This document shows, one piece after another, positions 2,477-49,600 of a DNA stretch of 64,000 bases. How positions within the stretch are numbered: position 1 is the stretch's first letter; each line of letters starts with the position of its first letter. A model generated the notes under the pieces. That model made no database searches. It was not told the origin of the DNA and saw only the letters and a list, made by a program, of their open reading frames with translations. The position numbers and the translations under genes are program-made. Source of the stretch: Bigelowiella natans CCMP2755 (lineage: Eukaryota > Protista > Cercozoa); the NCBI GenBank assembly GCA_000320545.1, contig ADNK01002279.1, forward strand, positions 1 through 64,000. Reading direction: 5' to 3'.

Positions 2477-4199
2477 TCATCTTCCCCATACAATCATATC
2501 CGAACACCATCTCAACTTTGCTCTTCACGGTTTCTCATTGAGCATTAGTACCTCCGGTGGGGGGGCTCGATTTGCTCTCCGGAATAAATTGATTTTCCCG
2601 CGGAAATGACTTTGATATACCCGTGTCAATGGAGCTAAACGGGCGCGCCAGGTCCCCCCCAAGCTTGTTTGAACTGCCGACTTCCCTCCAGTCAGTCCTC
2701 TGGGAGGCAGACATGCTGGAGGAGGGGGAAGGGAGGGGGGGTTGTGCGTGTAGAAAGGATCCGCCGGCCGGGTTTGTAGTGCTGTGTGAAAGGCATCTTT
2801 AGTAAACATAAAATCTCGGTTGGGACAATTCGTAATTCTTATATAGAGTAAGAGAACGAAGTATATATACTTGATCATGTTCAAGCAGGCAAGAATGCGT
2901 AACACGCATTGATTGGAATGGGAGGAAAGGACGGCACGCAACTACACGCACACCCTCGGAGGAATAAGTAAACGGAGTACAAGTATCAATTTGCCTATCG
3001 CAAATGTTTTTGTATTATTTTATTTTTTTAATTCTTATTTGGAAGTCAGTGAGACGAGGAAAGACAAACAAGAAAATGAAGAGAATATCCGAAGTCACAC
3101 AGTATAGAGTGTTATGAAAACGTCTTGTGCACATCATTTGGTGTAATTGATTGTTTAGCACCAAAACGCATAACGCATACAACGCGTGGATTGTGAATTA
3201 CCCTTCCGTTAAGAGGAGATCCTGTCTTCAGTGTCAGAAAGTGCTATTAGCTACAGGCAAAGAGATTAGCCATTAACTACATTGATTTCGATAACAAAGA
3301 GGAATGAGAAATTTGTCTATAAATGATCGTGGTCCACAACTGATATGCAGTCATGTGTTATAAAGGGGGTGATTCTTTCCTAGCGCAAAATGAAGGCGGG
3401 ATGGGCACTTCCGCCTTGCAAAAACGTAGTAAAAATGTGGCGACACTAACAAAATTCTCTCTAGAATATCAATTCTACAGATTATCTGAAGAATTCGAAA
3501 TGCCTTTGGAGCAATGACGCTATCACACCAGCCGATGACCTCCTCTTTACACAGAAGGAAGTTGAGCGGTGAAAAAGTGTCTTTGTCCACACAGGTCCGG
3601 AGCGAAGATGGGCTTGGCCCGTAAAATTTGTGCATACATTTTATTTATTTGTAAATTAATTCATTTCTGTGATTGCATCCCCTGAGGCAGGCTGCAACCG
3701 CGTGTTTCATCTTTCAAGCTCACCGGTGCCAGGTCTGCCCCATTATGCCGGCATATTCAGCCCTAACACTTTAGTGTACGCTCGCGAAGATCAGAAGTTT
3801 GAGGTCTATTTTCTTGATACGACATGTGATATTTTCAGTCGAAAGAAAAATATCAGGGCTTGCAATCCAACAATGGAATGGAAGGTTACTTCCGGTTGTT
3901 TTGAAAAGAATCGAATTGGGATTGCCCTCCTTCGTTCCTCGTTTTTCTGCACAGGTTTAAATCTGCATGGCGTTGTCGCTTGTGATGAACGCCTGGTCAA
4001 TGTGCTTTCTTCTTGTGTCAAACTAAGCCGACACTAAGATCTTTTTTGCCGTTTGCTGTTCATTGAAGGAAGGCTAGAAGGGCCCTGTCACCGAACCGCG
4101 TGTTGTGTTTGTGCATTTGGTGCGGATTGATGCAGCTTCCTAGCAATCTTTAGTGCTTATGCTCTACCTGGACCAGCTTTGCTATGCTCTTCGTCTCTG

Positions 4200-5250
4200 C
4201 GTGCTGGTTGTGCCGGAGGCACGCACAGCGGCAAGCTTTGTCGTTCATGTGGTTCTTGCTCGTGTGGTTTTTGCATCAATGCTTCATTCATTTTTCATTG
4301 TTCATTGTTCGCATGAACTTGTTCTGTTGCAAAGGCATTCAGAGTTTCACTTACATCTTTGGTGTTCGCCACATGTGGATGATGTGTTTTCTGGTTTTGT
4401 CCGTTTCTAGGTTTGACGTTGTCACGTTGCGCGTTGGCACTCCAGCACTGAACACCCAGCATTGAACACTGCTAGACTGAACTGAGCACACACACTGTCC
4501 GGCTGAACTACAAAATAGCGTGCGCAACAACCAAACGAGATGCGTGCATTTGGCACTAGTTGTGGAACAATGCCAGAATGGTCGTTCGATCTTCCTTGCA
4601 AGAATGACTCCAAGCTGGCAATCCAGCAGTGCGGCTGGAGTGCTGGAGTGCAAGTAGGTCGCATCACAGCTAGACAGCTAGACGCAACAGCGCTAGCAGC
4701 GCACTGGCGTGCAACGCACCAGCTAGCCAGGTAGCCACAGCTAGACAGAGCGTTCAACATCATCACCACACAGCTAGCTAGCTAGACAGCGCACTGCAGA
4801 CACACCTAGACATGCCAGCATGCAAGCATGGCTAGGTGGTCCCACAAGGGCACAACGTGACCACTGCATGGCTCTCTCTAGCTCTAGATGTCTTGCTGAA
4901 AACTGCTCATTGGCATTGCTAGATTGCTAGATTGTGGATTCGCGCGTGGACAATGCATTTCATTGTCAAACTAGCGCATGCTAGCATCTAGCTAGCTAGG
5001 CATGGCTGCCATGCTGCTACCAAACTCTAGAACTAGCAAATGCCATGTAGTAATGCGCTACTAGATTGCTTAGGGTTCCATTCTCACTGCGCATGCGCGA
5101 TTGCATTTCGTCTGTATCAATTGAAACAGCCAAAAACGGTCGCAGCACATCTAGATGTGCACACGCAACTAGGCAATATAGTTGCCAACAACGACGCTTT
5201 GAATTGTATGGCAGCTCAGAACTCCAATGTCATGTAAATCCTGTAAGAAT
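4200..5250. repeat. TpA-depleted, CTAG-rich degenerate repeat tract A
   Basis: In 4201-5040 nearly all TA steps are in CTAG (about 21 CTAG in 4670-5036). Shares a 39-bp motif with tracts at about 16970 and 49000. Confidence 0.8.
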
Positions 5251-6844: not shown

Positions 6845-7244
6845 CTGCAAAAGGCTAATTTAGGGATGTTGGAATGAAAGAAGTGTCGTCATCGATGTGC
6901 TGTAACAACGTGTAAAAGGCAAGCAAGCAACCCTCCGCAGGTTTGACATCATCTGCGCACATTTGATCGACAAAATATAGTGTCACACATCCCAATCGGT
7001 CACCTTCGAATCAAAATATATTCCTCCGTTTTTTCTTCGTTGCAATTTCTCCAACCGGAAATGAACTGCATGGACGCAGACCGACAGTCATTCGCCACCG
7101 CACTTCGTTTCCCAGAGCATTTTCTGTCATTGAGGCTATGCGCAGACCGCAGTGTTGACCTGTTTCCATGAAACCTCCCGTTAGTTGCTCCCATGCGAGG
7201 CAGTTTTTTCCTCCCTCACTTTTTCTCATTCGGTGAACTAATTG

Positions 7245-7860
7245 CATGCACTTGCTTTGCTCGGAACAAAGGCTTCATGCGGCTTGGATGCACCACAGTT
7301 GTCGCAGCGGAAAAACGCCCTTGATCCAATGGAGACACTGAAGCAATGGATGCGCCTGCGCCGAGTGCTTGCCGCAACGGATGTTCATTGTCGCATCACC
7401 AAAACTGGAGATGGAGCAATGCTAGCCAGTTTCCACTGAATTGGGACACGCACGGTGTTCATGACGTCGTCCAAACATTTGTGGAGTGAGTGTGTGGGCT
7501 AGCGGGATGCATGTGCTCATTTGCTTTCGCCAGCTAGCTGGTCATCGACACGAGCACACCAATGCATTCTGCACCCAGATGACCAATTCGCTAGTTCGGG
7601 TGCGATGGAGAACAAACGAAAGGCGCAAGGCCAGGGAGTGCACGTTGGTGCGCGGAAGTGGAGTCTCAGGCTTGATTCCTCTGCTCAGCTAGTTGCGTTC
7701 GTAATGCATTGTTTTGTCGCGTGCGTGGTGCGTCTCCGCTTTCGCATCATGCACGCAAACAGAGGTGACGATCGGGGTGTTTGTTTTTTTGCGGTTGCGT
7801 GTGACTCCATTGCAACGCACGCACGCATGCCAGCATGGCTCCACTTTGACAGGTCACATC
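7245..7860. repeat. TpA-depleted tract B
   Basis: Hand count in about 615 bp: 5 CTAG and only 1 other TA (GTAA near 7700). TA reappears abruptly at 7862. Confidence 0.8.
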
Positions 7861-7934
7861 TTAAACATCTCAAAAATAGGTTTTGTTCGGTGTACATCTT
7901 GCTAAAATTGTGTGCATTTGATGCAACATGAGAA

Positions 7935-10588: not shown

Positions 10589-12101
10589 TATATATATGTA
10601 GCAAATTGTACAGCACATGAAATCTTTAAAGTGGCTGTACACACATCATCTCCACGCATTAATATGGTAGATAGTTAACATTTAGGCAATTCAATGTGTG
10701 CGACTGATGAAAATTAGTATTAAGGAGCATGCAAAAACAGACATTCGAGGGCCATAGCTATTATCAATTGCCTACCATTTTTTTCAAAAAGCAACATACA
10801 CACACGTATAGACAAAATTATAATAACATTATAGATAGTCATATCGTTCATATACTGTAAATATATCGTGCAATATATTCCCCACCAGTCTTGTCTTTTG
10901 GAAAATATTCTTAAAGTGCTCATAAACCTCATCGACCTAAATGATGCAAAAAATGTCATTGTGCAATAATCCGCAAGAGAAGAATCACTCTAACCGAGGC
11001 CAGAATAGAACTGCAGTAATTGAGGTAAACTTACGAAAGGTTTCGCTTCCACATTTTGATGCTTTGTTTATATAAAAATACACCAACCACCTGCTCGTAG
11101 CAGAAGCTGCCTCCTTGCTTAAAAAAGCCTACATTAGCAGCATCGATCCAAACCTCTGCGCCTGAAAGCAACACGCATTGGCAAACTATCACGAACCACC
11201 CACCCACCCTAGCATTCTTCTTCGATGCCAAGCACACATTTCCTATTTGCATCGCGCTTTCGCAGGATGCGCGATTTCATCAAGAAAGCTGTTGAAGCAA
11301 CGTCTCAAAAGAACGTTTTCGATCGCGTGCGAACTCGCAGAAGTTCCATCGATTCTCGACTCAAAAAGCAACAAATAGGCCTTTGCCAAAGGCTGCAGCG
11401 AGGGCCGCTGCTGTCGCTACCTTGCTCGGTCTCGAGCTTTCTTACGAAGCCTCGTATCTTGTTCTATATTGTGAAGCATCATCGCAATCGTAAGTTGCAT
11501 ATCACCAAAGGTAGTCAGAGCTGCTATACACTTTTCAAAAAAGACGGCTGCATGTGGTTTTTCTTGGCTCTCTGCCTTTTCCGCACGATCGCAATTGCAT
11601 GCTTGCTCATCACCTGAAACTTGTCTTCAGCTTTGCTGTTGTCCGGTAGCAGTAGCTCGTCTTTGAGAAGAGCGACGAAGGCCTCGTCCATAGTGTAGGA
11701 GGGCAAGGCTAACGATGTCGGCAAGAACGGCAATTGTATTTAAACGCAATTGACGGAAACGAGAATGATTTACATCGAAGTTACCCGACCGAAGGACGCT
11801 CAAGACACAAAGTTGTAGCGAAATAACGTTTTTTTTGAAACGCGCTGACAACGCCTCTCACACTCCGCAAAAGTCGCAAAAACGGATTTAATTAAAAAAA
11901 AAAACAGGACGCTGACATTCTTCACGGCAGATTCACCACCAGGATAAGTCCGAAAATGAAAAGTCAAACGCACCAAGAGCTTTTTTCCCGGTTCCGAATA
12001 TCTCCAGAGCGGCCTTCGAGTATGGGTCGGTGTCCGTACTACGACGTTCATAAAACGAAGAAAATCAAGGAGCATCCACACACACACACACACATACACA
12101 A

Positions 12102-12147
<46 letters not shown>

Positions 12148-13023: not shown

Positions 13024-13096
<73 letters not shown>

Positions 13097-14960: not shown

Positions 14961-16029
14961 CGAGTGTTATCCGAATGACTATTTGCCTTTCATTATCTCG
15001 ATGTCTTCGGCGTCGAGGGTTTTCTTCACTTTACTGTCCGCACTGCTGTGATCTGGAGCATCCTTGTTTCTCTTCTCTCCGCCTCCCCCCACTGCAAATA
15101 ACTCGGTCGATGGCCGCTTCTTTGCCCCACCTCGGAGTACCCCTCTAAAAATGTCTAAGTAGCTCTGGAGAGCTACACGTTCTATTCTAGGTTTACCATG
15201 CGAAACACTATTGAATAGTAAACCCGTCAGCCTGTGCCCGGAGGGTACGATAACAGATGCTGGCCTTGAGGCACTCAAGCGGCGCTGTGAGCACGGGGAG
15301 AGATTCACGCTCCCCGTCCTTTCCGCGGTCTTCGAAGAGGGCTGGTGCAAACACATGATGAAGGCAAAGAGGAGGAGCCACCAGAGCCTACACGATGTTG
15401 CGTGAAGCTACGTCAGCAAGGCAAGCATGCAGCGCTCACAACATACTCTACAAAATCTACCCCAGCCGGAGGGACCCTGCGCCCACCATCATCGTCGTTA
15501 GCAGAATCTTCAAAAACGGACTGTATTTCAGAAAAAATATTGGCAAAAATTGAATTTTCCAAAAAAAATCGCCTCTTCCGCGACCCACATCCGAAGACCA
15601 AACGGTCCTCCTCCTTCCCCCCCGCTGGCTCTTCGGAGCAATCTAGATGGCCAGCTCCTCGTCCAGCCCGGCCGATTACTAAGAAAAATTGGACGAATGC
15701 AAGAAGAGGCAGGCTGCAACTTTGGATGATCTGCGTGCTCAGGAGGGGAGGAGAGCGACTGCAGCGAAGAAGTGCAAAACCCTCAAGATGGGCGGGTTTG
15801 GTGCCATCGAGGATGAAGTTGAAGGAAAGCTGAAACAGTTTCGCTCCTTCATTTCAACGCAGATCGAACAAAACATCTTCCGGGTGTGATTGACAAAGTC
15901 AGAACGTCCCAAAACTGCGCCCATTTTCTCTTTTTTTCCTTCTGAGCGCAAAAGGTGGAGGGGCGTTGTGTCAGCGTCCTTGAGGAGCACACCGAAGAAA
16001 TTGTGTCCTGCAATGCGAAGCCTGCTGAG

Positions 16030-17400
16030 TCACCACACTGAAGTTGTCAAGTAGCAGTTGATCATCAACGTGTGTGACACACTACCACACACAGCAAAAA
16101 AAAGAGAGAAAGACACTGCAACACGGTGATGTGGTGCACGACAGGCGCAGGCAAAGAAACATCGTTCACTGTCACTCCTTGTGTGTGATTGTGGTTTGCC
16201 AGAGCATTGGCACACCCGGATGCGGGGAGCACATGGGAACAGTGTGTGAGCATTGCATTGGAGCTTCTAGTTTTTGGTGAGACACCAATGAAGGTGTCTT
16301 TGTTGCGTCGCTTTCACGATCATTTTCGCTAGTTTGGGGTGTTTGCTCGAACACTTCTACAAAATTGCCACTTCTGGCTAGCTGGCGCGCTTCATTGTCG
16401 GTGAATTGGGCACTTTGTGAGTGTGCTAGTGTGAGAGCGAGGCGTGGACTGCCGCACCACCTTTGGATCACACATGACCTGCCAGAATTGGAGAGCCCCT
16501 GGAGCGCCGGCAAATGACAAATCTAGAAATACGACCGTCTTTTTGACCTGTCACTGAGCAACTCCACGATCCATCGAGTCGCTTCGAGACTTCGAGACTT
16601 CAGACCAGCTGGTGGGCGAGCTGCGCTGCGCGGCCACCTGTTTCACCTGTGGAACAGGTCGACTTGCTAGCTTGGGGTTGGAGAAAACTTGGTGGAGCCG
16701 CTAGGCCGCCCTGTTTGACAAGGAGGGCTCGCAGGGCTAGCTAGCTAGAGGGATTGCTAGTGACCCCTAGACCCAGCCGGTGGTCATTCGCGCTAGCTCG
16801 CCTACGCTCTCGAAACGGTGAAGCACCGAACACGTTGAATTGAACGTTGAATTGAAGATCAATGCATGCAAAAATGACATGCAGCGTCGTGAACATGTTT
16901 GACATTGAACATTGAAAGAACATGGAACATTGAACATTGAACACAATGATGAACATTGGACAAATCATCAATGCAAAAACTACATGAGCATGAACCACAT
17001 GGGAGACAAGCGCCAACACAAGTGCACAACGTGCGCGTGAACCGCACTTCAGCATTGAACTCTGAACACTGAAAGTTGAACTGAGCATTCCAGCATTGCC
17101 TAGATTGCTGGATGGGTGCAACACAAAATGTGCGAAAGAACCACATGGGAGACACACATTTGCACGCAGCAGAACCTGCAAACAAAAATCATTGCGAGGA
17201 CTTGTCAGCACCCTCTAGTCCTCTAGCCCTGTCCAGCTGTTGGTGGTGATTGTTGTCAAGGCTGGCTAGCTGGTCACCACGCGATGCGAAGTCTGCTTCC
17301 TCTTTTTTCACCACCACCCAAATCTTAGCAAGTTTGAAGAACAGAAGAATCTCATCAAAACTAAAGTGCGCCCGCGGTGTGTCTAGGTGCCGCATCTAGC
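16030..17400. repeat. TpA-depleted degenerate repeat tract C with TGAACAT heptamer array
   Basis: TA is almost confined to CTAG (e.g. gggctagctagctagag at about 16735-16750). Imperfect (TGAACAT)n at about 16835-16960. Homologous motif to tracts A and H. Confidence 0.8.
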
Positions 17401-27688: not shown

Positions 27689-27736
<48 letters not shown>

Positions 27737-28631
27737 ATGTGTGTGTGTGTGTGTGTGTGTAATTATGAATGCCGTGATATAAACGTCGGTGTGCAATACC
27801 GAAGGATCTTCACGTACGACTGCGGAAAGAAGAGAATGAAGAATCGCGAACTAGAGCACTGGTCCCTAAATACTCTACTTTCATCAATGCCAAAGCACCA
27901 ACGTGCAAACGCCAAACCGTTTCGCTATTCCTATATCTCTCCTCTCATTTCTGCCATCTTGTCGTTTCGCGAAGGCTGCAGCTTGTGCGCGAAAGCGTGG
28001 GGAAGCAGTACATAAACTTCATGGGCGGAGAGCTCAAATGTAGGTGCTTTAGAGGAAGTATAATGATGAATGTTCGTGGTGATTTACGGTCTTCGTCTTC
28101 GTATCAACTAGGGAATCGTTCTTCACGAGAATGCCTCGTGTTTAAGTATCTCCCAATATAATGAATTCCTTGAGTTAGCTCTCTTTTTCTCGTCGCTCTT
28201 TTATTCCCCCTCTCTGTCTGACTTCCCCCTCCCCCTCCCTCCACACTATGCGTATTTGCCTCGGACGCGTCTTGACTCGAAGCACACAAGTCAATGATTC
28301 ACCAGGTTTTCTCCCCCTCCTTTCCCTCCGCTCTGCTTTTGTGAGGCTCTGTTTTGTGGGGGTGGGAACGTCACGCTCCTTGACAGCTACGAGCCATGAC
28401 ATTCCTTGCTTCCAATTGTTTTTTACCTACTTAGGCTGATGAGGTACAGCAATCTTCCTCAAGTATCCGTGTTTCCTCGATGAGGCAGCGGAGGGTTGGG
28501 CGCCACAGGCGCAGCACGAACTCCCTGTCGCTCTCCCCCGTTTCTTCTTCACGCTTGAATTCGACTACGCGCCCCTCGATGGTACGCATGGTTGCATCTG
28601 ATCATTGAAAGGGCTTGTAAGAGAGAGGGAA

Positions 28632-32899: not shown

Positions 32900-33720
32900 A
32901 TGCATGTGGCATGTGTCCTACCTAGTGTTAGTCATCTACGCGCACATGCCAGACGATGATAGTGCTGCTATGCTATGTAGAGTACACATACCTAGACACG
33001 CGCACGCAAGCTTTGCTAGTGTGACTGGCCAAAGTTCTAAAGGTCTATAGGTGAGCCTTTCGATGCGCGGCGCTGTCAGAATGTCGACAACGTCATTGCA
33101 ACGCATCGCTGTTCTGCGGTCTCATATATTGTCGCACTAGCTAGCTAAGTAGCACGAATGTGATAAATGACATATATAGCAGATATGTGCTAGCATGTGC
33201 TAGCTAGCTAGTGTGCATGCACGCATGTCAACATCGCACGTTGTTTGTTGTGTTGCTTGCATCTAGCATATGTGAATGACTGCATGGAGCCTTGTACCCT
33301 TCTAGCCTTGCTATCCTAGCTAGCTAGCTAGCTAGTCGCCGTAGGTAGCTGATATTTTGATGTTATCAAAATAAAACTATTTACTTGCTAGCGGACGACA
33401 TGATTATACATTTCTAGATTTACATGCTACTAGGCTAGCGCATACTGCGCACTAGCACAAATGCTTATTAGACATGCACTAATATAAGGCATGGTCCCAT
33501 GTGCACGAGTTTGGTACACGCCAACACACTACTACTGATAGCTAGCTGGCTAGATAGCGCAAGCAATGCAACGCGCGCTCTCATCGCACAGCATCGCTAG
33601 CATAGAATAAGAAAACGTGGTCGCGTCGTCACCCTGGAGAGCTAGATCGAAAGATCGCTAACAGAATTCACTTGCCTATCACGATCCCCGCTGCGCGACA
33701 GAGAGCAACACGTTACGCAA
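32900..33720. repeat. Partially converted, CTAG-rich intergenic tract D
   Basis: Roughly 20 CTAG in about 800 bp, including cctagctagctagctagctag at about 33315-33336. TTAG and CTAA occur but I saw no TTAA. Many other TA steps remain. Confidence 0.7.
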
Positions 33721-35400: not shown

Positions 35401-35433
<33 letters not shown>

Positions 35434-36999
35434 CGCACCTGAGTCTGGATTGATCATTCCTTTGTTCGACCCGAATTCCGAAATGCCCAAGTCGTCCACT
35501 ATACAACCCGATTTGACCTCTTGCGCGTCCGCTATCTTCGGAGTGCTGTAGTAGTAGGAGTTGGTGACTTTGGGGGCCTCTGGCCTCGGGGTCCTGAGGT
35601 AGTACGGCGTCTGGAAGGGGAGCCGCTGATCGGGGGGGGGGCGTCTGTTTTGAGGCGTCGTCGTCCTGATGCTGCTGCTCGACTCGCTGTGGTCAGGAAT
35701 CATCGGAGGGGGAGGCATCAATGACCCTCCTTGGTATCGATCATACAAAACATCGACGATCTTCCCCGCCGCGCGCCACACTCGCCCCACGGTCTTCCCG
35801 ATGACTACCTCAATCAACGGCACCTTCTGGTCGTAGTGGCTCACGAAGTTCTTCACCTTGAGGGAGGCGTCCGACTCCTTGCGGATGCCCTCGATCGTCC
35901 TCCCCTGGGGCCCGATCACCGCTCCTTTGATGTGCTTTTCCACCAGGATTATAGCAGAAGCTGCGAGCTGGTCAGAGTCAGCCTCGGACGACTCTCCTCC
36001 TCCTCCTCCTCCTCCTCCTCCGGTTTTGATATCACTACTTCTCTCACCGTCATTTCCATCGTTCATACCACCTTCGAATATCTCCCCTGCCTCTCGGGGG
36101 TCGTCTGCGCCCCCCCCCGCCCCTGGACTGGGGATTGGACTGGGTATAGGGCTGGGTATAGGGCTAGGAATGGGGCTAACGCTGCTGCTGCTGGGTACAG
36201 TAGATGGGCGAGAAGAGGAGAAGTCTAATGCGACAGCAGGATTGTTGCTAGGCTCCGTGCTGCTGCTGCTTTGCACGTGCGCAAGACTACCTTCTTCTCC
36301 ATTCTCGACTTTCAGGTCGTCGATTTGCTGGCCGATGTTGGTGACGAGGAGTCGGATCGCCTCGTTTATCTGCTTGGTCTCGCCGTAGATCCGAAGAATG
36401 CGCGGTCGGCCCATCTTCCCGCCCTCATCTGTAAAAGTCAATCTACATCCTGTCCTCTGAGCGTAGTCGGCAATGGTGGCCCCCTTTCTACCTACTATAC
36501 CAGCTCTATACTGTGCAAGGACGAGCAGCCTCACAAAGAACTCTCCGTCTTCTTGCCTAGGCCGCTGTCTCTGAGGCGTGGGTCGTCTTCTTGGCCTGGG
36601 ACCTCTCGCCTGGGGTGTTGATGGCCCCCCCCTCCGCCGCATATCCTGCGACATCGGTGGAACAAACTGCGTGTGCATAGAAAAATTGTTAGGGCCAAAG
36701 TTTGGCGAATGAGGATGGTTATTCTGAGAAGGGGAGTAGTTGCGCCGTCGGATCTTCCGTCCTCCTCTAGCAGAATAAGAGTGTGGGTCATCCCTGATAT
36801 GATGTTCGTCTCTTGAGTTTGACCGTTGTCTTCGGTTAAGATCTCTAGGGTTTGACCTTTCCCTCCTCTCCCGTTTGCGGCGTATGGAGGGACTATCCAT
36901 ACTTGGAGACAGGCCAGGGGTATACCACCGGTTGCTGTAATTCTTCTTCGGGCCATTTCTCCCATTATGATTCGGGAGCTTTGACGGCCTTTTGCTCAT
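33803..36999 (-). CDS. RNA-binding protein with two KH domains fused to an importin-alpha-like C-terminal ARM module (6 exons)
   Basis: Exons 36999-35439, 35245-35097, 34955-34805, 34597-34471, 34141-34050 and 33909-33803 all join in phase at GT-AG sites. KH motifs: AGIVGRKGATI and GAVIGPQGRTI. The C-terminus SGVLQVIERLQSHQNHLIYDRALRILEKF matches importin-alpha 'IE.LQ.H.N..IY..A..I.E.YF'. Confidence 0.85.
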
Positions 37000-37299
37000 T
37001 TCCACGAACGTCGACGGCGAAAGCACCCGCTAAACCTCCTCGCTCCTTCCTCGGCCACGCTCTTTCTCCGGAACTGATGGCGCCCCTTGAGAACTATGAC
37101 AAAAAAAAAACCTTTGCAAGTGTATCGAAACCTTTGCAAGTGTATTGGAACCTCGGGGCGCGGATCAGGATAGCTTTGGGGCCAAAAGTAACAGGGTTCG
37201 GGTGATGGGTGCCCGGTCTCTCAAGTGGCGGTGGGGGAAGGGCAGGTCTTAAATATGTTAGTGATAACTATTTAATCCATAGGAGAATTCAGAAGAAAA

Positions 37300-39306: not shown

Positions 39307-40709
39307 GAAAGACAAACGGACGAAGTTCGGAGCCTTGACCGTTATCGACAAAGGTGCAATATGTTCTACTTGCCAAAAAGAATTGTTACCTAAGATAAAA
39401 TGGTGTAATAGTAACCTCTTCTTTTGAACCGATGTGCAATCTCATTACATTTCGAGTTGTTAAAGTGTCAATGAGCGAGGCGCATAGCATAGCACGCCAT
39501 GTCCAGCATCTGATAGCCTGTAACTAAATGGTCCATGTTGCAGCAATGCAGCCAGACATTTTGTGAAAATGCGTCAGATTTTTAATCAGAGCAACTTGTT
39601 CACACCAACAACTCCCTCAAATTCTGCTAACGAACTAGCTACAAGCCCGTCGCCTAAATTACATGCGTCATGTCCATCATCATTGGACTGCACCAGCACG
39701 TGCATGCGCACAGCGCGCAATGCACATGCTAGCATGTTCATGATGGACGACGCTCATTGTTTGCATGCGCATGCGTGCGATGCGGCAATTCTGTGCACTT
39801 TCATGATGAATGACTGACGTGACAGTCTAGCAGGCCATGAGAATGATGGACATGTGACAGCAGTCTGTGCATTCTAGCATTGCACGACAGTGTGCCATTG
39901 CTGTGTCTGTGATCAGTGCACAGCAAAAAAAAAATTGAATTCAGGCGACACTGATGTGATGGACATGTGATGTCACATGCACATTGCACACATCCAGACA
40001 TGCCATTGCTGTGTCCACAATGAGAGGCATGATGCGGATGCACTCAGCAGAACAAGCATGTTGTCCAAAGACAAAGACGCCATGATTGAAAAAATGATGC
40101 CAATTTGGACAATGCTGATGTGCTCAGCAGGACAAGTCTAGAAGTGCATCATCTGAAGACAAGGGCCCGTTTGCGCCTTCATCAGGCTTCGCTGGTGCAG
40201 CGCCAAATGGATTTGCCGAATGTGAATCGAGGTTGCACCCTCCACTACCCCCCACTTTCATTGCATCCACATCCATCCTGCTGATTTTTGCAAATTCAGA
40301 GCCAGCCTCTAACTGTTGCATCCGAAGGTGTCACTTCAACAGAAAATGGGGGAGGTGGTGTTGGATGCTGTGATTGAAAATGCAAATGACACTGATGGAT
40401 TGAAACATTGCACAAAAGCACAAAGTGCATCCATTTCCATGCATTTTTTCCCAAAATCAAGGCAACGGCTAGAACGGGTGCAAGTGTGGCAGTCGTCATC
40501 ATCTTGATTCCATTGCACTTTGAACATGAATCGAGAACTCTGTTCCCAACTTGAAAAAATCATGTCAACTCTGGAACAACTTCAAAAAAGTGTTCAATTG
40601 TTCCACGCCCAAGCCTTTTCAACATTGGCCGGACCACCATGAGGATTGGACAATTTGGGTGCTCCATCACACTGACAGACTTTGCCATGAAATGACAATG
40701 AGAGGCGCA

Positions 40710-42159
40710 TCAAGATCTGGGCGGGCGAACAACTCCAGCTCTTTTCACTTCTTCCACCAAATGCGAACGGAGGTCCACCGCATGAGCCACCCTTTGAAGG
40801 TTCAGCTCAACGTGTTCATCGTTTAGCAATTCAATCGGTGTCAAGCCCAATTTGCAACACTTCGGTGGCTTCACAGCCTCTGCCCTGCTGTCTTTCACTT
40901 CGGTGTGCCCGGCCTTGCATTCTTCAATGAGCTCTGACACCTGAGCGACCCCTTCCTTTGCATCGATTCTCTTTCTCCTCAGTTCTGCAATTGTTTCATC
41001 CTTGATCCTCATCATCCCTCCCTCATCGTCACGTGCTGTGTCGCTTCTGTCTCGTTCAACGGCCTTCGCAATGTCATGGGAATTTGTGAGGTTGTGCAGC
41101 TTCGTGCATGCGAACACGATCTTGCCTGCCTTCCTGTGATGAAACCTCATTGGAGACCACAAAATGCCGAATCTTCCAACCAGACGACCGAAGGCGCATT
41201 CTGTGGTGATTCTCAATTGACTCACTGCAAAGTTGCAATTCGATTTCTCATCACCCAGGTCTGACCCGGTGAAAGGCGACGTCAAAAGTTCATGGACCCC
41301 GCAAGCCGCGTCCCCGATCAGGAAATGACCAACCTCGAGAGCTCCATTCAGCAACTCTGAAGCTGCTTGTGTGACTTCATCATCTTCCATGCGACAGAGT
41401 TGGAGCCGGAGCCTCCTGTTGCTGTGCTGGCAGCGATGAAACGACAGTCAGAGTCGCAGACGGCCTGCAGGTTCAACGCATGATGGTGCTGCCTGCAGTG
41501 GAATCTTTTGACATGCTGTGTTTCTTTGTCGCTGGGTCTCCGCATCTTCACTGACAATCCGTCCATGGCTCCTGTGCAACCTTTGATTGCTTGGTTCATG
41601 CTGAGGCCTCCAAACCCAGCTTCAACTTCTTGTCGACCTGTGTTTCATTCGAAGGATCAAACCCAATTTTGCAGCACTCGTTTGTTGCATCCAATGTCCT
41701 CCAGAAATTGTGGTGGACGGAACGTTCCGCCACACCATGCAGGTCAGCTGTCCAGCTGTGTCTGGGCACGATCCTCCTGCTGGTAACCTGAGCGTCATTG
41801 ACAATGAAAGTTTGTGGGGATGCAATCTTCGCTGCTTGAATGCCGTTCATGCTTCTCTGACCGGGGTCCAATGCCAGAGTGTCGTCACAAGTTTTGTGGA
41901 ACAACTCCAAGGGCATCCTGTGTCTGCGTCTGAAAGCCATTGGAGACAGCCTGTCGATTCTCTTGATCCAATCCAGCCTGTTCGCATGTGATCTGGGCTT
42001 CGGCTTCCTTCTCTTCTTGTTCTTCAGGTGATCCACATGCTCGAGCACTTCCAATGCGTCAATGGCACGTTCAGCATCAAACCCCACCAAGTCCCATGGT
42101 GCAATGGAAGACGGGTCAAACGTGGGTGTCAACAAACCAGCGAGCATCATGGGCATCAA
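40710..42159 (-). pseudogene. PIF/Harbinger (DDE_Tnp_4 / HARBI1-like) transposase, frameshifted and missense-riddled
   Basis: Frameshift-linked frames retain RLDW..., FRRRHRM, LRLPAGGSCPDTA, GCTGAMDG, ALNLQAVCDSDCRF, FLIGDAACG, NCNF...RITTECAFGRLVGRFGILW and KLHN. An apparent 8-nt duplication (ggacagct) lies near 41750. Confidence 0.92.
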
Positions 42160-43119
42160 AACGTGAGGTGTGGGTGGTGAGAGTCATTGTTGCCCGACGC
42201 AGCGGAGGATGACCTGTGATCTGCCCAGTTGAATGCCGCCCTGCGTGATTCCGGGTGGACCAACATGACTTGCTTCACGTGCCACACCTTGTCGAAGTGC
42301 AAGCCGATGAACTGCCTCGGGATTCGGGATCAGATTTGGATGCATGAACAATGAACAATGATGATGAACCACACTTCCAAAACGTGACAAGACACTTGCA
42401 GTGTGCGAAGTGCAGTGCCTCGAACCAACTTCAGTGAGGTCCAACACAACCAGTGAAACCATGAGGAATCAAGAATGGCATTCTGGCCACTCCTCCGTTC
42501 CTAGTTTCATTGTCTTCAGTGCCTGACATTTGCCAACTTCAGGACCACGCATCCCCAAATCATGCCGCGATGGTTTGCTCATGCTTGGAGATCACCAAGC
42601 AAGAACACCACACCTGCGAACCCCAAGCGAACAATCCCGTGGACCACACCTTCATGGTCTGCTTCACACCTGCCACAATTTCCCCGGCTTTTGCGGAGAC
42701 ATTGCCCTCACTGGAAGGCATGAAGATGGAGGAGGATGCATTCTTCGTTCCCAGTCCACTTGGACAACGAGCTTCGCAATGACCACAGTCGGGCACTTTG
42801 TCGGATGCATCCCCGGCTTTTGCGGATGCAAAGCCCCAATCATTGCAATTGGAAGCACTAGCTTCACGCCAACCACAACATCCCCGGTCCAATGGAGACA
42901 TTGCCTGGAGGGCATGAAGTTTGAGAAGGACACCTTCATCCTGACGGGATTCATCCGGGATGAATCTTGGATGCAGACCCGAAAATCCTTCACTTGGCAG
43001 CCAATTCGCCGGTGGCCTGCCCCATCGGTGAACAGGAAAGTGGCACAGGGATGAGGGGAAAAGCCACCCTCGCAACCGAAAAACCCCCCGCCCAGTGCCA
43101 CGTCGGCGAATGCAACTTC

Positions 43120-43445
43120 AAATCTTGAACACAGATCCATGCATCCTTCATCTGGCTACCGAGTCACCGGTGGCTGGGGCGACAAGTCTGTCTACCCCAC
43201 CAGTGACCAGGAATGTGGTTCAGGGGTGGGAGGTGACCAACCCCCCCTGCACATTGCCGCATCGCGCCAATTTTTTCCGAACGTGCATGACTCTGAATCT
43301 TGAATGCCGATCCACACATCCTTCATCTGGCTACCTAGTCACCGGTGGCTAGGGCGACATGTCTGTCCATCCCACCAGTGTCCAGAAATGTGGTTCAGGG
43401 GTAAGAGGTGATCAAACCCCCCGCCCATTGCCGCATCGCGCGCCG
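43120..43445 (+). repeat. Two imperfect direct repeats of about 150 bp (about 43120-43268 and 43296-43443) at the end of the Harbinger tract
   Basis: Shared text aatcttgaa...gatcca..catccttcatctggctacc.agtcaccggtggct.gggcgaca.gtctgtc...ccaccagtg.ccag.aatgtggttcaggggt..gaggtga.caa.ccccc...cattgccgcatcgcgc. Confidence 0.92.
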
Positions 43446-43768
43446 CATCGGCGGCAACTGCCAGACTGGACAATGCATGCACTTGCATTTTTTCGTTGTC
43501 GCAGCTCGTCATCCATTTTTCAACTGACGACAATACCACGGAGTTTGTCTCTATGATAAAACGCAAAACAAACACATCACTACATAAAATCCAGTCAACT
43601 TCTCATCTACGAGCACATACCACAGGATTACAGGTGGCTAGTGCAAGTGCGACAATGTGTCTGTTACTGCCGGGATTTAACAGAATATTGTTGGCCACCA
43701 GACCTTTTTTGTTATTATTTTCCCCAAATTTTGAATTTTTAAATCGAGACCCGTATTCAATTGGGCGA

Positions 43769-46159: not shown

Positions 46160-47490
46160 TGCATTGATGGCATCATGCATCGATCTGGGCGCGCATGCAC
46201 ATGCGATGGCATGCAAGCAATGTTGTGTGCACATCTACGCAAGAAGCGAAGCATAGCTATCATTAGAGATTATAGCCTTCATTTGTGCATGCGTAAACCC
46301 ACACGTTTCATTGTTTCCATGTGTGTGATTACGTGCACACATGTTCTCTTCCACTAGCATGTAGCACACATGCACTGACGAACATGTGAAATGTCCGATG
46401 ATTTGCGTAGCTCAGACCATGGTGTACACGAATAGAGACATTAGCGTCTACATCTAGACATGCCGCCTCTGACTTGCATCGCCATCGCAGATGTTGCAAT
46501 GTGACATGACTAGCTAGATGTCCATGTGGTCGCGATTCACGGCGACAAATCAGCATGCACAACGAATCACAACGATCAAATCAAGCATCAAACGGCTCTA
46601 AAAGCTCAACTTGTGCGCACATGCTGGTGAACATTGTCGCGTGCCTTTGAAAATCATTGAACATTTGACAAACGATCATTGTGCTCATCTGTTTGTAACA
46701 ATTTACGCTCTTTCGTGACCATGATCTTTGTGTCAACGCACTACACAACATGAGTAAGTGATGATGAAATCATGACTACCACGACTTTTGTGTCTGGCAG
46801 TCCTGCTTTGCAGGACTAGCGGTTGGCGACCTGGAGGAGAGCGAGGAAGAATGTGTTGAGGATGCTTGGAAATCCGATTCATATTCTTTCAAATGAGGGA
46901 TGTCGATTGCAGAACTAGAGGACGATGAACACGACGAAAAAGTCATTGTTTCCAACAAGGGAGGTGTCGTCTCTGACAAGAAGCTGAGAGCTTCATCTAT
47001 GTGCGTACGTCTTACTCGTGGAATTTCTCAAAACCGCTTCGATTCCGCAGCTCGACGCCAGTGATGCATGTTCGGAAACTCGCAGCACTTTAGTCCGAAG
47101 CTTGTGGTGCACAACAGCGCACGTGCACAGAGGGACACACATGCATACATGCATGTACATGCATGTATGCATGCACATCCATTGCGTGCGTGTCATCATG
47201 TGTGCACGTCATGCCCGCGATGCGCACACGTACATGTGCCTGTCAAAGTAGCATTGTTGCTTGCATGCCCACGTAGTGCTAGCAGGCATGCATGCAAGGT
47301 CGAGCGTCTAGAACATGTATGTGTGCATGGTTTTCGCGTCTTCTTGTCGTCTGAATCAGACCATGCGCTGAGCTGCATCAAATGTCTGAGTGAAACCGAG
47401 CAAAGCGTGCAAGTCGCAATTTCCAGACGATTATTGGGCACGGCTGTGGGATGCATGCATCGTACGCACCGCCATGCTACGTGCGATCAA
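46160..47490. repeat. Partially TpA-depleted intergenic tract G, including a fossil (TA)n microsatellite at 47135-47178
   Basis: Strong CATG/TGCA excess. 47135-47178 is a strictly alternating purine/pyrimidine run built only from CA, TG and TA steps. Confidence 0.7.
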
Positions 47491-48060
47491 TGAGCAAGGT
47501 TTATTTCGGTCATATACCCTTCGCTTAAATGACGTAGGGAGATTTATCGCAATCACTTTGAGCAACATCAATGGACTTGCGCAGCAGGCAGGCAAAGAAA
47601 GGTCAAACTCATCATGTTTTTATTAAACAAATCGAGTGGGGCGGTGTTTCTTGCGCGTATCCTTTCGCATGACATGCGCCATGCGCGATCCACCGACTCG
47701 CACATGTCGCTGATCACATGTTTAATGATTTTCTGAGCACATTGAGGCGTGTTTGACAGGCAGACTATGATTCTACTTGGATGTAATTCAGAAAACACAA
47801 GCGAACTGGTCATTCATGTAAAAACTGGAGCTCAGACGTAGGATGTTTATTTGTAGACCGCGAGCAGTAAACGATCTCATGAAGCCCCAAAAAATCAAGT
47901 TAGATTTCGTAATCTACACTTTTCGTCCCCAAATATCCTCTTCGGTTATTTTCCCTTGATTCAAATTTGTTTGAATTCGTGCTCGCTACGAAGCCCCCCA
48001 ATAAGGTCAGTTCCGCCAAGATCATCTTTGAGCCTCGCAAAACAATCAACGATCCAACGA

Positions 48061-48660
48061 TCAAGGGAGCAAGTGATTTTCGAAATTTTTCAATATGGAT
48101 AGAATCAGCGTGAGATCGAACGTCTTCTCAGTCATCATTAGCTTCAAGAATTCCGGCATGGTTGAGAAGGACACCACATGCTGGTGGATGGTTTTCATGA
48201 CGAGTTTGAGCATTCCTAAACTAGGAACCGCGCGAGAATCTGGTTTGGCCTTCTTTTTGGCCTCCAAAAATTCACTGTGCAACGTTTCTGCCCAAGCCTC
48301 AGCTTTTACGGAATTGCCAGACACTCTCTGCCTGTTGCCTTTCACGATCATCTTGCAAATGGCATTGATTAAGTTGGGAGCATCCGAGTCCGTTTTGAAA
48401 TCTTCGTCAGTGAAGAGCTCTTCGTCTATCACCTTATCTCGCCATTTGGAAGGAAACCTCTGTGTATCTTCAAGGAATTCCAACAAAACTTCTCTTCCGT
48501 TTGGAAGTGTGTCAAAGTCCACACGGCGTCCCTCAGTAGAGTTGCTGTGCACGAGCGTCCTCTCATCATGTACAATAGCCGCATTGGATGCACCGATGTT
48601 GAGAAGAATCGGAAGCAGCCATAAGGCAGCGGTAGCAACATCACACATTCGTTTTGCCAT
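48061..48660 (-). pseudogene. Tyrosine-free 199-aa intronless ORF in a partly converted tract; probable degenerate mobile-element or captured gene
   Basis: No Tyr in 199 aa. A frameshifted continuation (LDRWIVDCFARLKDDLGG...) follows. No family recognised. Confidence 0.4.
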
Positions 48661-48859
48661 GGTTGGGGGGTCTGCTTTCCCTGATCCTCGGAGTTTGAAC
48701 GAGCCGAGTGTTTTGGAATTTTTGAATTTTTTGAATTCGAAACCGCGCCTTCGGTTGTCATTACATTTTGATCATAAAAGTGTTGTCGCACGTGTAGTTT
48801 CCCCTTGAAATGTGAAAACATGAACAATGCAATCAGGCGTTTTTTGCTTGAGTCCTTGC

Positions 48860-49600
48860 AACGACTGTTGTTGAGGCTCTGTTACGTGCACACGCCTGTC
48901 ATCATGCATTTCGGTTGCACGCTTGCAACGTTTTGGAAATGCAGTTCATCATCATTGCTCATTGCACACTTGTCTCCCAATTGTTGTCTCCCACGTGGTT
49001 CTTGTGAACGTGGATTTGCATCAATGCTTTGTTCTGCTGCGTTCTGCTCTGGTTGCAAAAATCGGAATCTGGCCATGAAATTGTTCGACCGAATTGGTGA
49101 CAACAATCAGAGCGCAGGTCTGCTGAGGAGTGAAGCGCTAGCCCCAATGCTGCGTGCCCACGCTTGTCTTCCATGTGGTTCTGTGGTTCTCGCAGCTAGC
49201 TAGCTAGACGAATTGCAGAATCTTGGAAAAAAAGTTGCACAAAAAATTCCATCTCGAATCGAACACACAAACTAGCAAACGCCATGTGTGTGGTTTGAGC
49301 TGGCTGTGGTGGTCCCTAGCAATTTGATCTGCACGCACGCACGTGTGCATTCTTTGGCGATCATGATCACAATCGCCAGCAATGGCGATGCGTTCTGGCG
49401 TTGCATCTAGAAATGCTCAATCAAAACGTCCAGATTTGCAATGGACATGTGCACCGCATCCACGGCATTTGCTGCGCGAGCTAGCGAGCAGCGTGACATT
49501 CCAGCATTGACAACCGAAGCTGCACACGACGACGACTGATGCTCATTCACACATGTGGTTTTGTGCTCTAGATGTCATGCAATGGCGCCGCAAACGCTAA
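48860..49600. repeat. TpA-depleted tract H
   Basis: In 48860-49590 every TA I found is in CTAG (about 9). Shares the repeat motif with tracts A and C at 48991-49029. Confidence 0.8.

Follow-up and report, generated by a model that had tools for sequence, protein, structure and literature searches.

Background

The closest described counterpart of the locus analyzed here is the hypermutation seen in foreign DNA integrated into the genome of Bigelowiella natans, in which TpA is changed to TpG or CpA (Mettrop et al. 2026, bioRxiv 10.64898/2026.01.13.699255). In mutation-accumulation lines of that organism, one insert of a nucleocytoplasmic large DNA virus (NCLDV) and one of a virophage mutated at ~4-6e-7 per site per generation, approximately 1000x the background; the changes, seen in some lines only, were nearly all TpA transitions (A>G or T>C), and the hypermutating NCLDV insert was single-copy. 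In the same preprint, 324 low-TpA coding sequences were enriched for PF13359 (5 observed, 0.19 expected) and for reverse transcriptases, and 124 clusters of TpA-depleted 1-kb windows were delimited with the thresholds Rho_TA<=0.43 and Rho_CA+TG>=1.52. An ADAT2-like protein (Bn78255) with residues linked to DNA editing was put forward as candidate deaminase, and the preprint states that amphioxus ADAT2 acts on DNA; flanking bases are not discussed in its main text. In the present study, a 64-kb stretch of B. natans CCMP2755 (contig ADNK01002279.1, positions 1 to 64,000; referred to as the window, in which all coordinates are positions) was analyzed, with emphasis on a TpA-purged island at 39661-43533 that carries the probable relic of a PIF/Harbinger DNA transposon. 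It is concluded that this relic was very probably altered after landing by a locus-confined TpA>TpG/CpA process, most likely that of the B. natans lines.

The phenomenon was therefore already described in 2026, and the locus is a confirmation of it, not a discovery; the statement in the initial annotation of the window that no named description of such a system was known is superseded by the preprint. New here are the codon-level proof, a flank rule, sharp borders, additional islands, environmental occurrences, and scars with a CTAG core.

Results

Dinucleotide composition was expressed as the ratio of observed to expected counts (o/e). The region 40710-42159, within which the initial annotation had placed the hypermutation, contains 2 TpA in 1450 bp (o/e 0.02), as compared with ~68 expected at the background o/e of the window (Poisson p ~7e-27), and has CpA and TpG o/e values of 1.55 and 1.52, respectively. 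The depletion is thus real, but the island is wider than had been recognized and extends over ~39661-43533. Within these 3873 bp only 17 TpA remain (o/e 0.07; ~258 expected at background density), CpA and TpG are raised to o/e 1.56 and 1.70, and the GC content is 51%; CpA (403) and TpG (384) are nearly equal in number, which marks the process as strand-symmetric. The borders are sharp and the depletion is confined to the element: TpA per 300 bp drops from 19 outside to 3 inside at the left edge and rises from 4 inside to 18 outside at the right edge. Outside the island, the TpA o/e of the same window is 0.81, and the TpA frequency of 6.2% and window GC of 44.85% are close to the 6.0% and 44.87% given for the nuclear genome by Mettrop et al. 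The 1-kb windows starting at 40001, 41001, and 42001 have TpA o/e values of 0.07, 0.02, and 0.04 and CpA+TpG values (the mean of both o/e values) of 1.63, 1.55, and 1.59, which places 40001-43000 inside the cluster thresholds of the preprint. The features of the island and of its gene are as follows.

39661..43533, no strand assigned: TpA-purged island corresponding to the whole degenerate element (from composition and flank densities)
40713..42027, minus strand: Harbinger/PIF transposase pseudogene in five frame segments, without Tyr, covering profile positions 39-429 of 435
41091..41566, minus strand: DDE_Tnp_4 (PF13359) catalytic domain (Pfam), split by a frameshift near 41340-41370
41815..41825, minus strand: frameshift, approximate site (profile alignment)
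41748..41759, minus strand: 8-bp insertion scar that causes a frameshift; coding strand ACAG-CTGG-ACAG
41620..41640, minus strand: frameshift at the passage from the N-terminal region to the DDE domain, approximate site (profile alignment)
41340..41370, minus strand: frameshift within the DDE domain, approximate site (profile alignment)
39773..39789, no strand assigned: candidate subterminal inverted repeat (17 nt, 94% complementary) with its partner at 43427-43443
43121..43441, plus strand: tandem duplication with copies at 43121-43267 and 43296-43441, 88% identical

Assignment of the gene to the Harbinger-type transposases, as in the initial annotation, was borne out by Pfam matches to DDE_Tnp_4 (E=4e-12 for an 83-amino-acid (aa) piece and E=2e-10 for a 226-aa piece) and by alignment to a family profile. 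An exhaustive HMMER search against 1.84 billion representative proteins yielded 1506 relatives, the nearest of which are ~48-49% identical; a word-based homology search with the 226-aa piece found one relative only. The 226-aa fragment of the transposase of the window is itself already present in a protein database, its entry originating from EukProt. The closest relatives are P0003 (462 aa, from an MMETSP transcriptome), P0005 (517 aa), and P0002 (from a marine metagenome). P0003 has normal TpA (o/e 0.85) and 4.3% Tyr, and both P0003 and P0005 align over the full length, including the conserved C-terminal tail. The profile was built from 35 full-length relatives, has 435 positions, and is independent of the consensus residues given in the initial annotation; it reproduced those motifs, which read FkrrYRM, LrwLaGgsyldia, gcvgAlDG, gyflvGDaAY, and FNfylSqlRiriE in the profile. 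The catalytic D, D, and E codons are intact at 41561-63, 41310-12, and 41199-201; the triad is carried by GAMDG, GDAAC, and RITTECAFG, and the alignment shows no variation at D27 and E64. Tyr is absent from the open reading frames (ORFs) of 187, 83, and 226 aa, as had been noted initially, and given the 3.3% Tyr of the relatives the probability of finding none in 496 residues is ~6e-8. These three ORFs exist as described; the gene, however, runs through five frame segments and not three, and the LRLPAGGSCPDTA motif sits in a 67-aa ORF in a different frame.

TpA was lost by mutation and was not natively absent, as established by three independent tests. The first was a reversion test, in which each single-base change in the aligned codons was scored for altered fit to the profile. 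A gain of more than 1 bit was obtained with 25 of 115 nonsynonymous TA-restoring changes and with 116 of 2384 others (odds ratio (OR) 5.4, p=1.4e-9). Among 16 transition contexts only CA>TA (p=5e-8) and TG>TA (p=0.004) stand out, and reversions of the AA>AG type recovered conserved residues in 0 of 59 cases. A leave-one-out control on the intact P0003 and P0005 was flat (OR 1.3 and 0.9), so the effect is not produced by the genetic code. All 11 codons listed in the initial annotation were located at their positions, and at each a single CA>TA or TG>TA change gives a residue that fits the profile better, usually the commonest one. TpA transitions have replaced four strongly conserved residues and account for ~25 profile-disfavoured residues in all. 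Two codons at conserved tyrosines serve as examples.

41920..41922, minus strand: CAC, coding His in the FRRxYRM motif where the family has Tyr (profile 0.58); one CA>TA change restores Tyr
41301..41303, minus strand: TGC, coding Cys in the GDxAY motif where the family has Tyr (profile 0.67; from the profile and relatives)

At the GDxAY tyrosine position, Tyr is present in 6 of 6 TpA-normal relatives and Cys in 4 of 4 TpA-purged sequences. Further examples are CCA at 41781-83, which codes for Pro (profile Leu, 0.51), and ACA at 41202-04, which codes for Thr (profile Ile, 0.43).

For the second test, the two copies of the tandem duplication (147 bp) were compared, and 7 of their 17 differences were pairs within the TA/CA/TG family (null mean 2.4, P=0.004). 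Two of the mismatches are double, with CA in one copy and TG in the other, which requires that an ancestral TA lost its T in one copy and its A in the second. The third test used a short scar as tracer. Throughout the window, the tetranucleotide CTAG is found between identical 4-nt direct repeats (N4-CTAG-N4); when only structures with non-repetitive flanks were counted, the core was CTAG in 26 cases, CCAG in 12, and CTGG in 4, with 0-1 for control cores. The CCAG and CTGG forms are CTAG scars converted by TA>CA or TA>TG.

The changes are TpA-specific A:T>G:C transitions that affect both strands equally and are bounded by the element; the corresponding proposal of the initial annotation, with replacement of conserved residues, is upheld by the reversion test, the tandem copies, and the scar tracer. 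ApA, ApT, and CpG contexts at conserved residues are untouched. ApA and TpT o/e values in the island (1.16 and 1.10) are not below those elsewhere (1.05 and 1.02), and ApA reaches 1.38 in the gene. CpG decay was considered as a contributor and rejected, as CpG-restoring changes recover no conserved residues. The window is rich in compound microsatellites, of the types (CA)n(TA)n and (TA)n(TG)n (12077-12141, 13028-13094, 27691-27755), whose long (TA)n tracts are intact; this shows that TpA is not attacked indiscriminately.

The TpA that survive in the island define a flank rule: mutability is several-fold lower for a T that follows C or, equivalently, for an A that precedes G. Nine of the 17 survivors are CTAG, and C lies 5' of T in 24 of 34 residual strand contexts, compared with 19% elsewhere (p=8e-11). 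The bias persists when CTAG sites are left out, with OR 7.5 (p=0.009) in the main island and OR 2.9 (p=3e-5) in the other islands described below. A two-rate model gave ~10-fold protection by the flank, with a predicted CTAG survival of 63% (87% observed), and of the TpA that lack a protective flank ~99% have disappeared, which is near saturation. The same context is the rarest in the experimental data: in a hand tally of scaffold 10 from Table S2 of Mettrop et al., TAT/ATA and TAA/TTA were each mutated 67 times, TAC/GTA 52 times, and TAG/CTA 20 times (20 of 206); the remaining 5 mutations lay outside TpA. Among the 211 mutations listed there for scaffold 10, four are T>C changes at which the next reference base is not A (ATG three times, ATT once), and one of these four has a neighbouring mutation 2 bp away in its own line; the text of the preprint places all GC-biased mutations on TpA.

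Missense outcomes of the process are Tyr>His/Cys, Ile>Thr/Met, and Leu>Pro/Ser, and the stops TAA and TAG are removed. TAA, TAG, and TGA occur at 1.0, 6.2, and 53 per kb in the island, and at 27, 24, and 32 per kb in the background. With TAA and TAG lost, purged DNA has few stops besides TGA, and long ORFs consequently overlap on both strands; such ORFs of ~160-175 aa were found, for example, at 42530-43054 (plus), 42560-43075 (minus), and 42664-43140 (minus). The inflation is modest in this island (2.6 stop-free stretches of >=100 codons per kb, as compared with 1.6 elsewhere). Gene callers may report ORFs of purged DNA as unannotated genes, and annotators should be warned accordingly.

The five frame segments of the transposase gene require at least four frameshifts. 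TpA transitions create neither stops nor frameshifts, so the frameshifts are separate events, and they may be earlier than the transitions. The initial statement that hypermutation has inactivated the transposase is not sustained: the DDE triad is intact, and the gene is broken by frameshifts that TpA transitions cannot make. One frameshift is caused by the scar at 41748-41759, which represents a 4-bp duplication plus a CTAG later changed to CTGG; conceptual removal of 8 bp restores an unbroken match to the profile (...PDTA/DLHGV...). Some of the hypermutation, at least, came after the insertion, as the CTAG of the latter now reads CTGG. Element termini and a target site duplication (TSD) could not be defined, and the 17-nt subterminal inverted repeat, whose motif is found again at 43254-43268, was the only terminal structure detected. 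A transition-tolerant alignment of the ends scored 34.5, within the shuffle range (maximum 41). TWA target sites would themselves have been mutated by the process. None of the other ORFs of the island has a Pfam match, and no Myb/SANT-like second ORF was found among them; such an ORF may have been degraded past recognition or be absent, and it is not decisive for recognition of the relic.

The signature of the main island (TpA lost, CpA/TpG gained, CTA spared) recurs in five other parts of the window, and the six islands together occupy ~15% of it.

4101..4600, no strand assigned: TpA-poor island, o/e 0.35, within a cluster of N4-CTAG-N4 scars at 4.0-5.2 kb
6901..7900, no strand assigned: TpA-poor island, o/e 0.30, same signature
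15251..17400, no strand assigned: TpA-poor island, o/e 0.31; C-TA makes up 68% of the residual TpA strand contexts, and 20 CTAG are present
46501..47000, no strand assigned: TpA-poor island, o/e 0.32, same signature
48001..49600, no strand assigned: TpA-poor island, o/e 0.27, CTA-sparing signature

No Pfam domain was found in any ORF of these five islands. The islands at 15-17 kb and 48-49.6 kb have in common a (CTAG)3 motif followed by ...ATTG and, judged by this shared motif, may belong to one element family.

The N4-CTAG-N4 structure behaves as an 8-bp insertion, that is, a 4-bp target duplication plus CTAG, and looks like a transposon excision footprint. Identical 4-nt direct repeats flank 36 of the 197 CTAG in the window, where ~0.4-1.5% would be expected by chance. 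The scars are ~7-fold denser in TpA-poor islands, form clusters at 4074-5169, 16329-17396, 33141-33452, 39729-40138, and 49196-49481 in addition to the copy inside the gene (41748-41759), and reiterate in tandem, as in ATTG-CTAG-ATTG-CTAG-ATTG at 4915-4934 and in (CTAG)3-4 arrays. A search for an intact donor with CT...AG ends and a 4-bp TSD revealed nothing convincing, and a literature search returned no family matching the scars. On the plus strand, converted scars in the islands are CCAG in 9 cases (4442, 4573, 7830, 17090, 17233, 39994, 41752, 43461, and 49501) and CTGG in 1 (49395; binomial p ~0.02). This excess of CCAG could reflect a strand bias of the CTAG context or chance, and CpA and TpG are balanced overall. 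Elsewhere in the window, a 531-aa ORF at 35431-37026 (minus strand) combines two KH domains with long linkers of low complexity; no relatives were returned by word-based homology searches with it, even when the KH domain alone was used.

Searches starting from Tyr-free relatives of the transposase of the window led to two marine metagenome fragments that are free of TpA: L004 (ENA ERZ27291013), with 0 TpA in 801 bp, and L005 (Tara Oceans PRJEB4352, ERR1726717), with 0 TpA in 523 bp. CpG is nearly absent from L004 as well (o/e 0.11), which suggests that its genome undergoes a second decay, directed at CpG. A third fragment, L001 (ENA ERZ23491953), has a TpA o/e of 0.28 and was positive in the reversion test (OR 7.8, p=5.5e-5). 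All three are only 31-45% identical to the protein of the window over the aligned C-terminal part and hence represent independent hits. Scars of the form N4-C[TC][AG]G-N4 were found twice in 3.35 kb of purged contigs, where ~0.13 would be expected by chance, and were absent from 9.3 kb in four TpA-normal contigs. A widespread genome defence of marine protists, in which a 3' G or 5' C protects and with which the undescribed N4-CTAG-N4 scar lesion travels, is one conceivable extension of these data, although we regard it as rather doubtful.

Discussion

The proposed course of events is that a Harbinger element landed and that its TpA would then have been changed to TpG or CpA on both strands, nearly to saturation. 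As agent we tentatively prefer a TadA/ADAT2-like deaminase directed to silenced foreign chromatin, which would convert adenine to hypoxanthine in 5'-TA-3' DNA; hypoxanthine would pair with C at replication. Hypermutation was on in some of the B. natans lines only, which suggests epigenetic or RNA-guided targeting, and the sharp borders of the island argue for targeting delimited by the element. At the rate of the preprint, corresponding to ~6e-6 per mutable base per generation, the observed depletion (k*t ~2.2) would translate into roughly 4e5 generations, a figure that we infer from these two values alone.

Several observations weigh against this interpretation or limit it. The sequence identifies neither the enzyme nor the damaged base: since TpA is palindromic, damage to A and damage to T are not separable from it, and the excess of trinucleotide products, lacking ancestral states, did not separate them either. 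The adenine mutator of the initial annotation is accordingly unproven. No close unmutated copy was found, and the ancestral states were inferred from the profile and not observed. Some of the residual CTAG may be younger insertion scars instead of survivors. CpG is also low in the island (o/e 0.65, and 0.51 in 40001-41000) as compared with 0.97 elsewhere, and a second process may contribute.

The alternative that fares best, which we consider unlikely, is that thymine is the damaged base, for example by TET/JBP-like oxidation to 5-hydroxymethyluracil (5hmU) or by some other modification, which would mispair with G and result in T>C. Because TpA is self-complementary, TA>CA and TA>TG would be one event on opposite strands under thymine damage as well, and the flank rule can equally be read as the sparing of T after C. 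Dinoflagellates place 5hmU preferentially at TpA and TpC, which also speaks for it. TadA/ADAT enzymes, on the other hand, naturally act on A after U in tRNA (U33-A34), which fits TpA and favours adenine. Nothing positive was found for thymine damage at this locus, and the preprint reports an ADAT2-like protein with DNA-editing-linked residues.

A process triggered by duplication, like the repeat-induced point mutation (RIP) known from fungi, was the form in which the initial annotation cast its finding ('inverse RIP', a repeat-targeted mutator), and it now appears improbable. Its targets are mobile elements, which are often multi-copy, and the island contains an internal tandem duplication. 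There is, however, no second copy of the element in the 64-kb window and no close relative (none above ~49% identity) among the 1.84 billion representative proteins; TpA persists in (TA)n microsatellites and other simple repeats, and the hypermutating NCLDV insert of the preprint is single-copy.

Errors of the WA>WG type made by a Pol-eta-like polymerase during repair synthesis at an often-damaged locus, also among the initial candidates, have very little probability. Pol eta makes A>G errors at WA, more strongly at TA, which would account for the target. Such errors should also affect ApA, however, and ApA and TpT are undepleted in the island, AA>AG-type reversions recovered nothing (0 of 59), and 206 of 211 experimental mutations lie at TpA (Mettrop et al. 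2026).

Still less probable is an element that was TpA-free from the outset, either because its donor avoided TpA to an extreme degree or through selection against UpA in mRNA. TpA is mildly under-represented in most genomes, as in the rest of the window (0.81), and an expressed relative (L003) has an o/e of 0.42 without signs of damage. Values of 0.02-0.07 are nevertheless far under any ordinary bias; the depletion extends to both strands and to non-coding sequence; positions conserved as Tyr, Ile, and Leu carry the replacements that TA>CA/TG predicts, with intact controls flat; and changes that postdate the duplication and the scar insertions are of the TA>CA/TG type. The weakest alternative, ADAR-like editing of a double-stranded RNA (dsRNA) copy followed by reverse transcription and integration, which was likewise an initial candidate, can practically be dismissed: ADARs do prefer a 5' U and hyper-edit repeat-derived dsRNA, but they favour a 3' G, which is disfavoured here, Harbinger moves as DNA by cut-and-paste, the signature extends over the whole element with sharp borders and is strand-symmetric, and the preprint sees mutations arise in genomic DNA in culture.

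Host editing of A:T to G:C that is specific to foreign DNA would be a mechanistically new eukaryotic genome defence, with a role comparable to those of RIP and APOBEC and the opposite direction. The process might also supply DNA adenine editors of natural origin. The flank rule provides a quantitative constraint that any candidate enzyme must reproduce. The same signature is evidenced in wild marine sequence data.

Comparison with known systems

Fungal RIP resembles the process described here in that one transition class at one dinucleotide affects both strands of sharply bounded mobile DNA. RIP, however, changes C:G to T:A at CpA and thereby makes TpA, whereas here TpA is destroyed and GC is raised; RIP makes stop codons, whereas TAA and TAG are removed here; and RIP depends on sequence duplication and on a sexual cycle, neither of which is indicated at this locus. 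AID/APOBEC3 enzymes likewise defend against foreign nucleic acid, in their case retroelements and viruses, by enzymatic editing of bases in a specific context, and leave a fossil dinucleotide signature in integrated copies. What APOBEC deaminates is C in single-stranded DNA, at the time of reverse transcription, and its effect is strand-asymmetric (plus-strand G>A), in contrast to the symmetric A:T>G:C changes in resident chromosomal DNA seen here. Hyper-editing by ADAR shares clusters of A>G, the 5' U preference, and the association with repeats, but takes place at the RNA level and in metazoans only, favours a 3' G, and is heritable only if retro-copied.

TadA and ADAT2-ADAT3, the leading candidate chemistry, deaminate A after U or T, and engineered TadA acts on DNA. 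To our knowledge, no natural role of these enzymes in genome defence has been established. ADAT2/3, several tRNA substrates of which carry G35, would not obviously be expected to avoid a 3' G, and no enzyme is linked to this locus.

The closest correspondence is with the hypermutation of foreign DNA in B. natans, with which the locus shares the dinucleotide target, the products on both strands, the footprint, PF13359, CTA/TAG as the least-mutated context, and the GC and TpA frequencies. In the preprint, ongoing mutation is shown for NCLDV and virophage inserts only, and older targets are deduced from composition alone. The present locus adds to this a transposon relic resolved at the codon level, a quantified flank rule, sharp borders, and TpA-free marine metagenome fragments.

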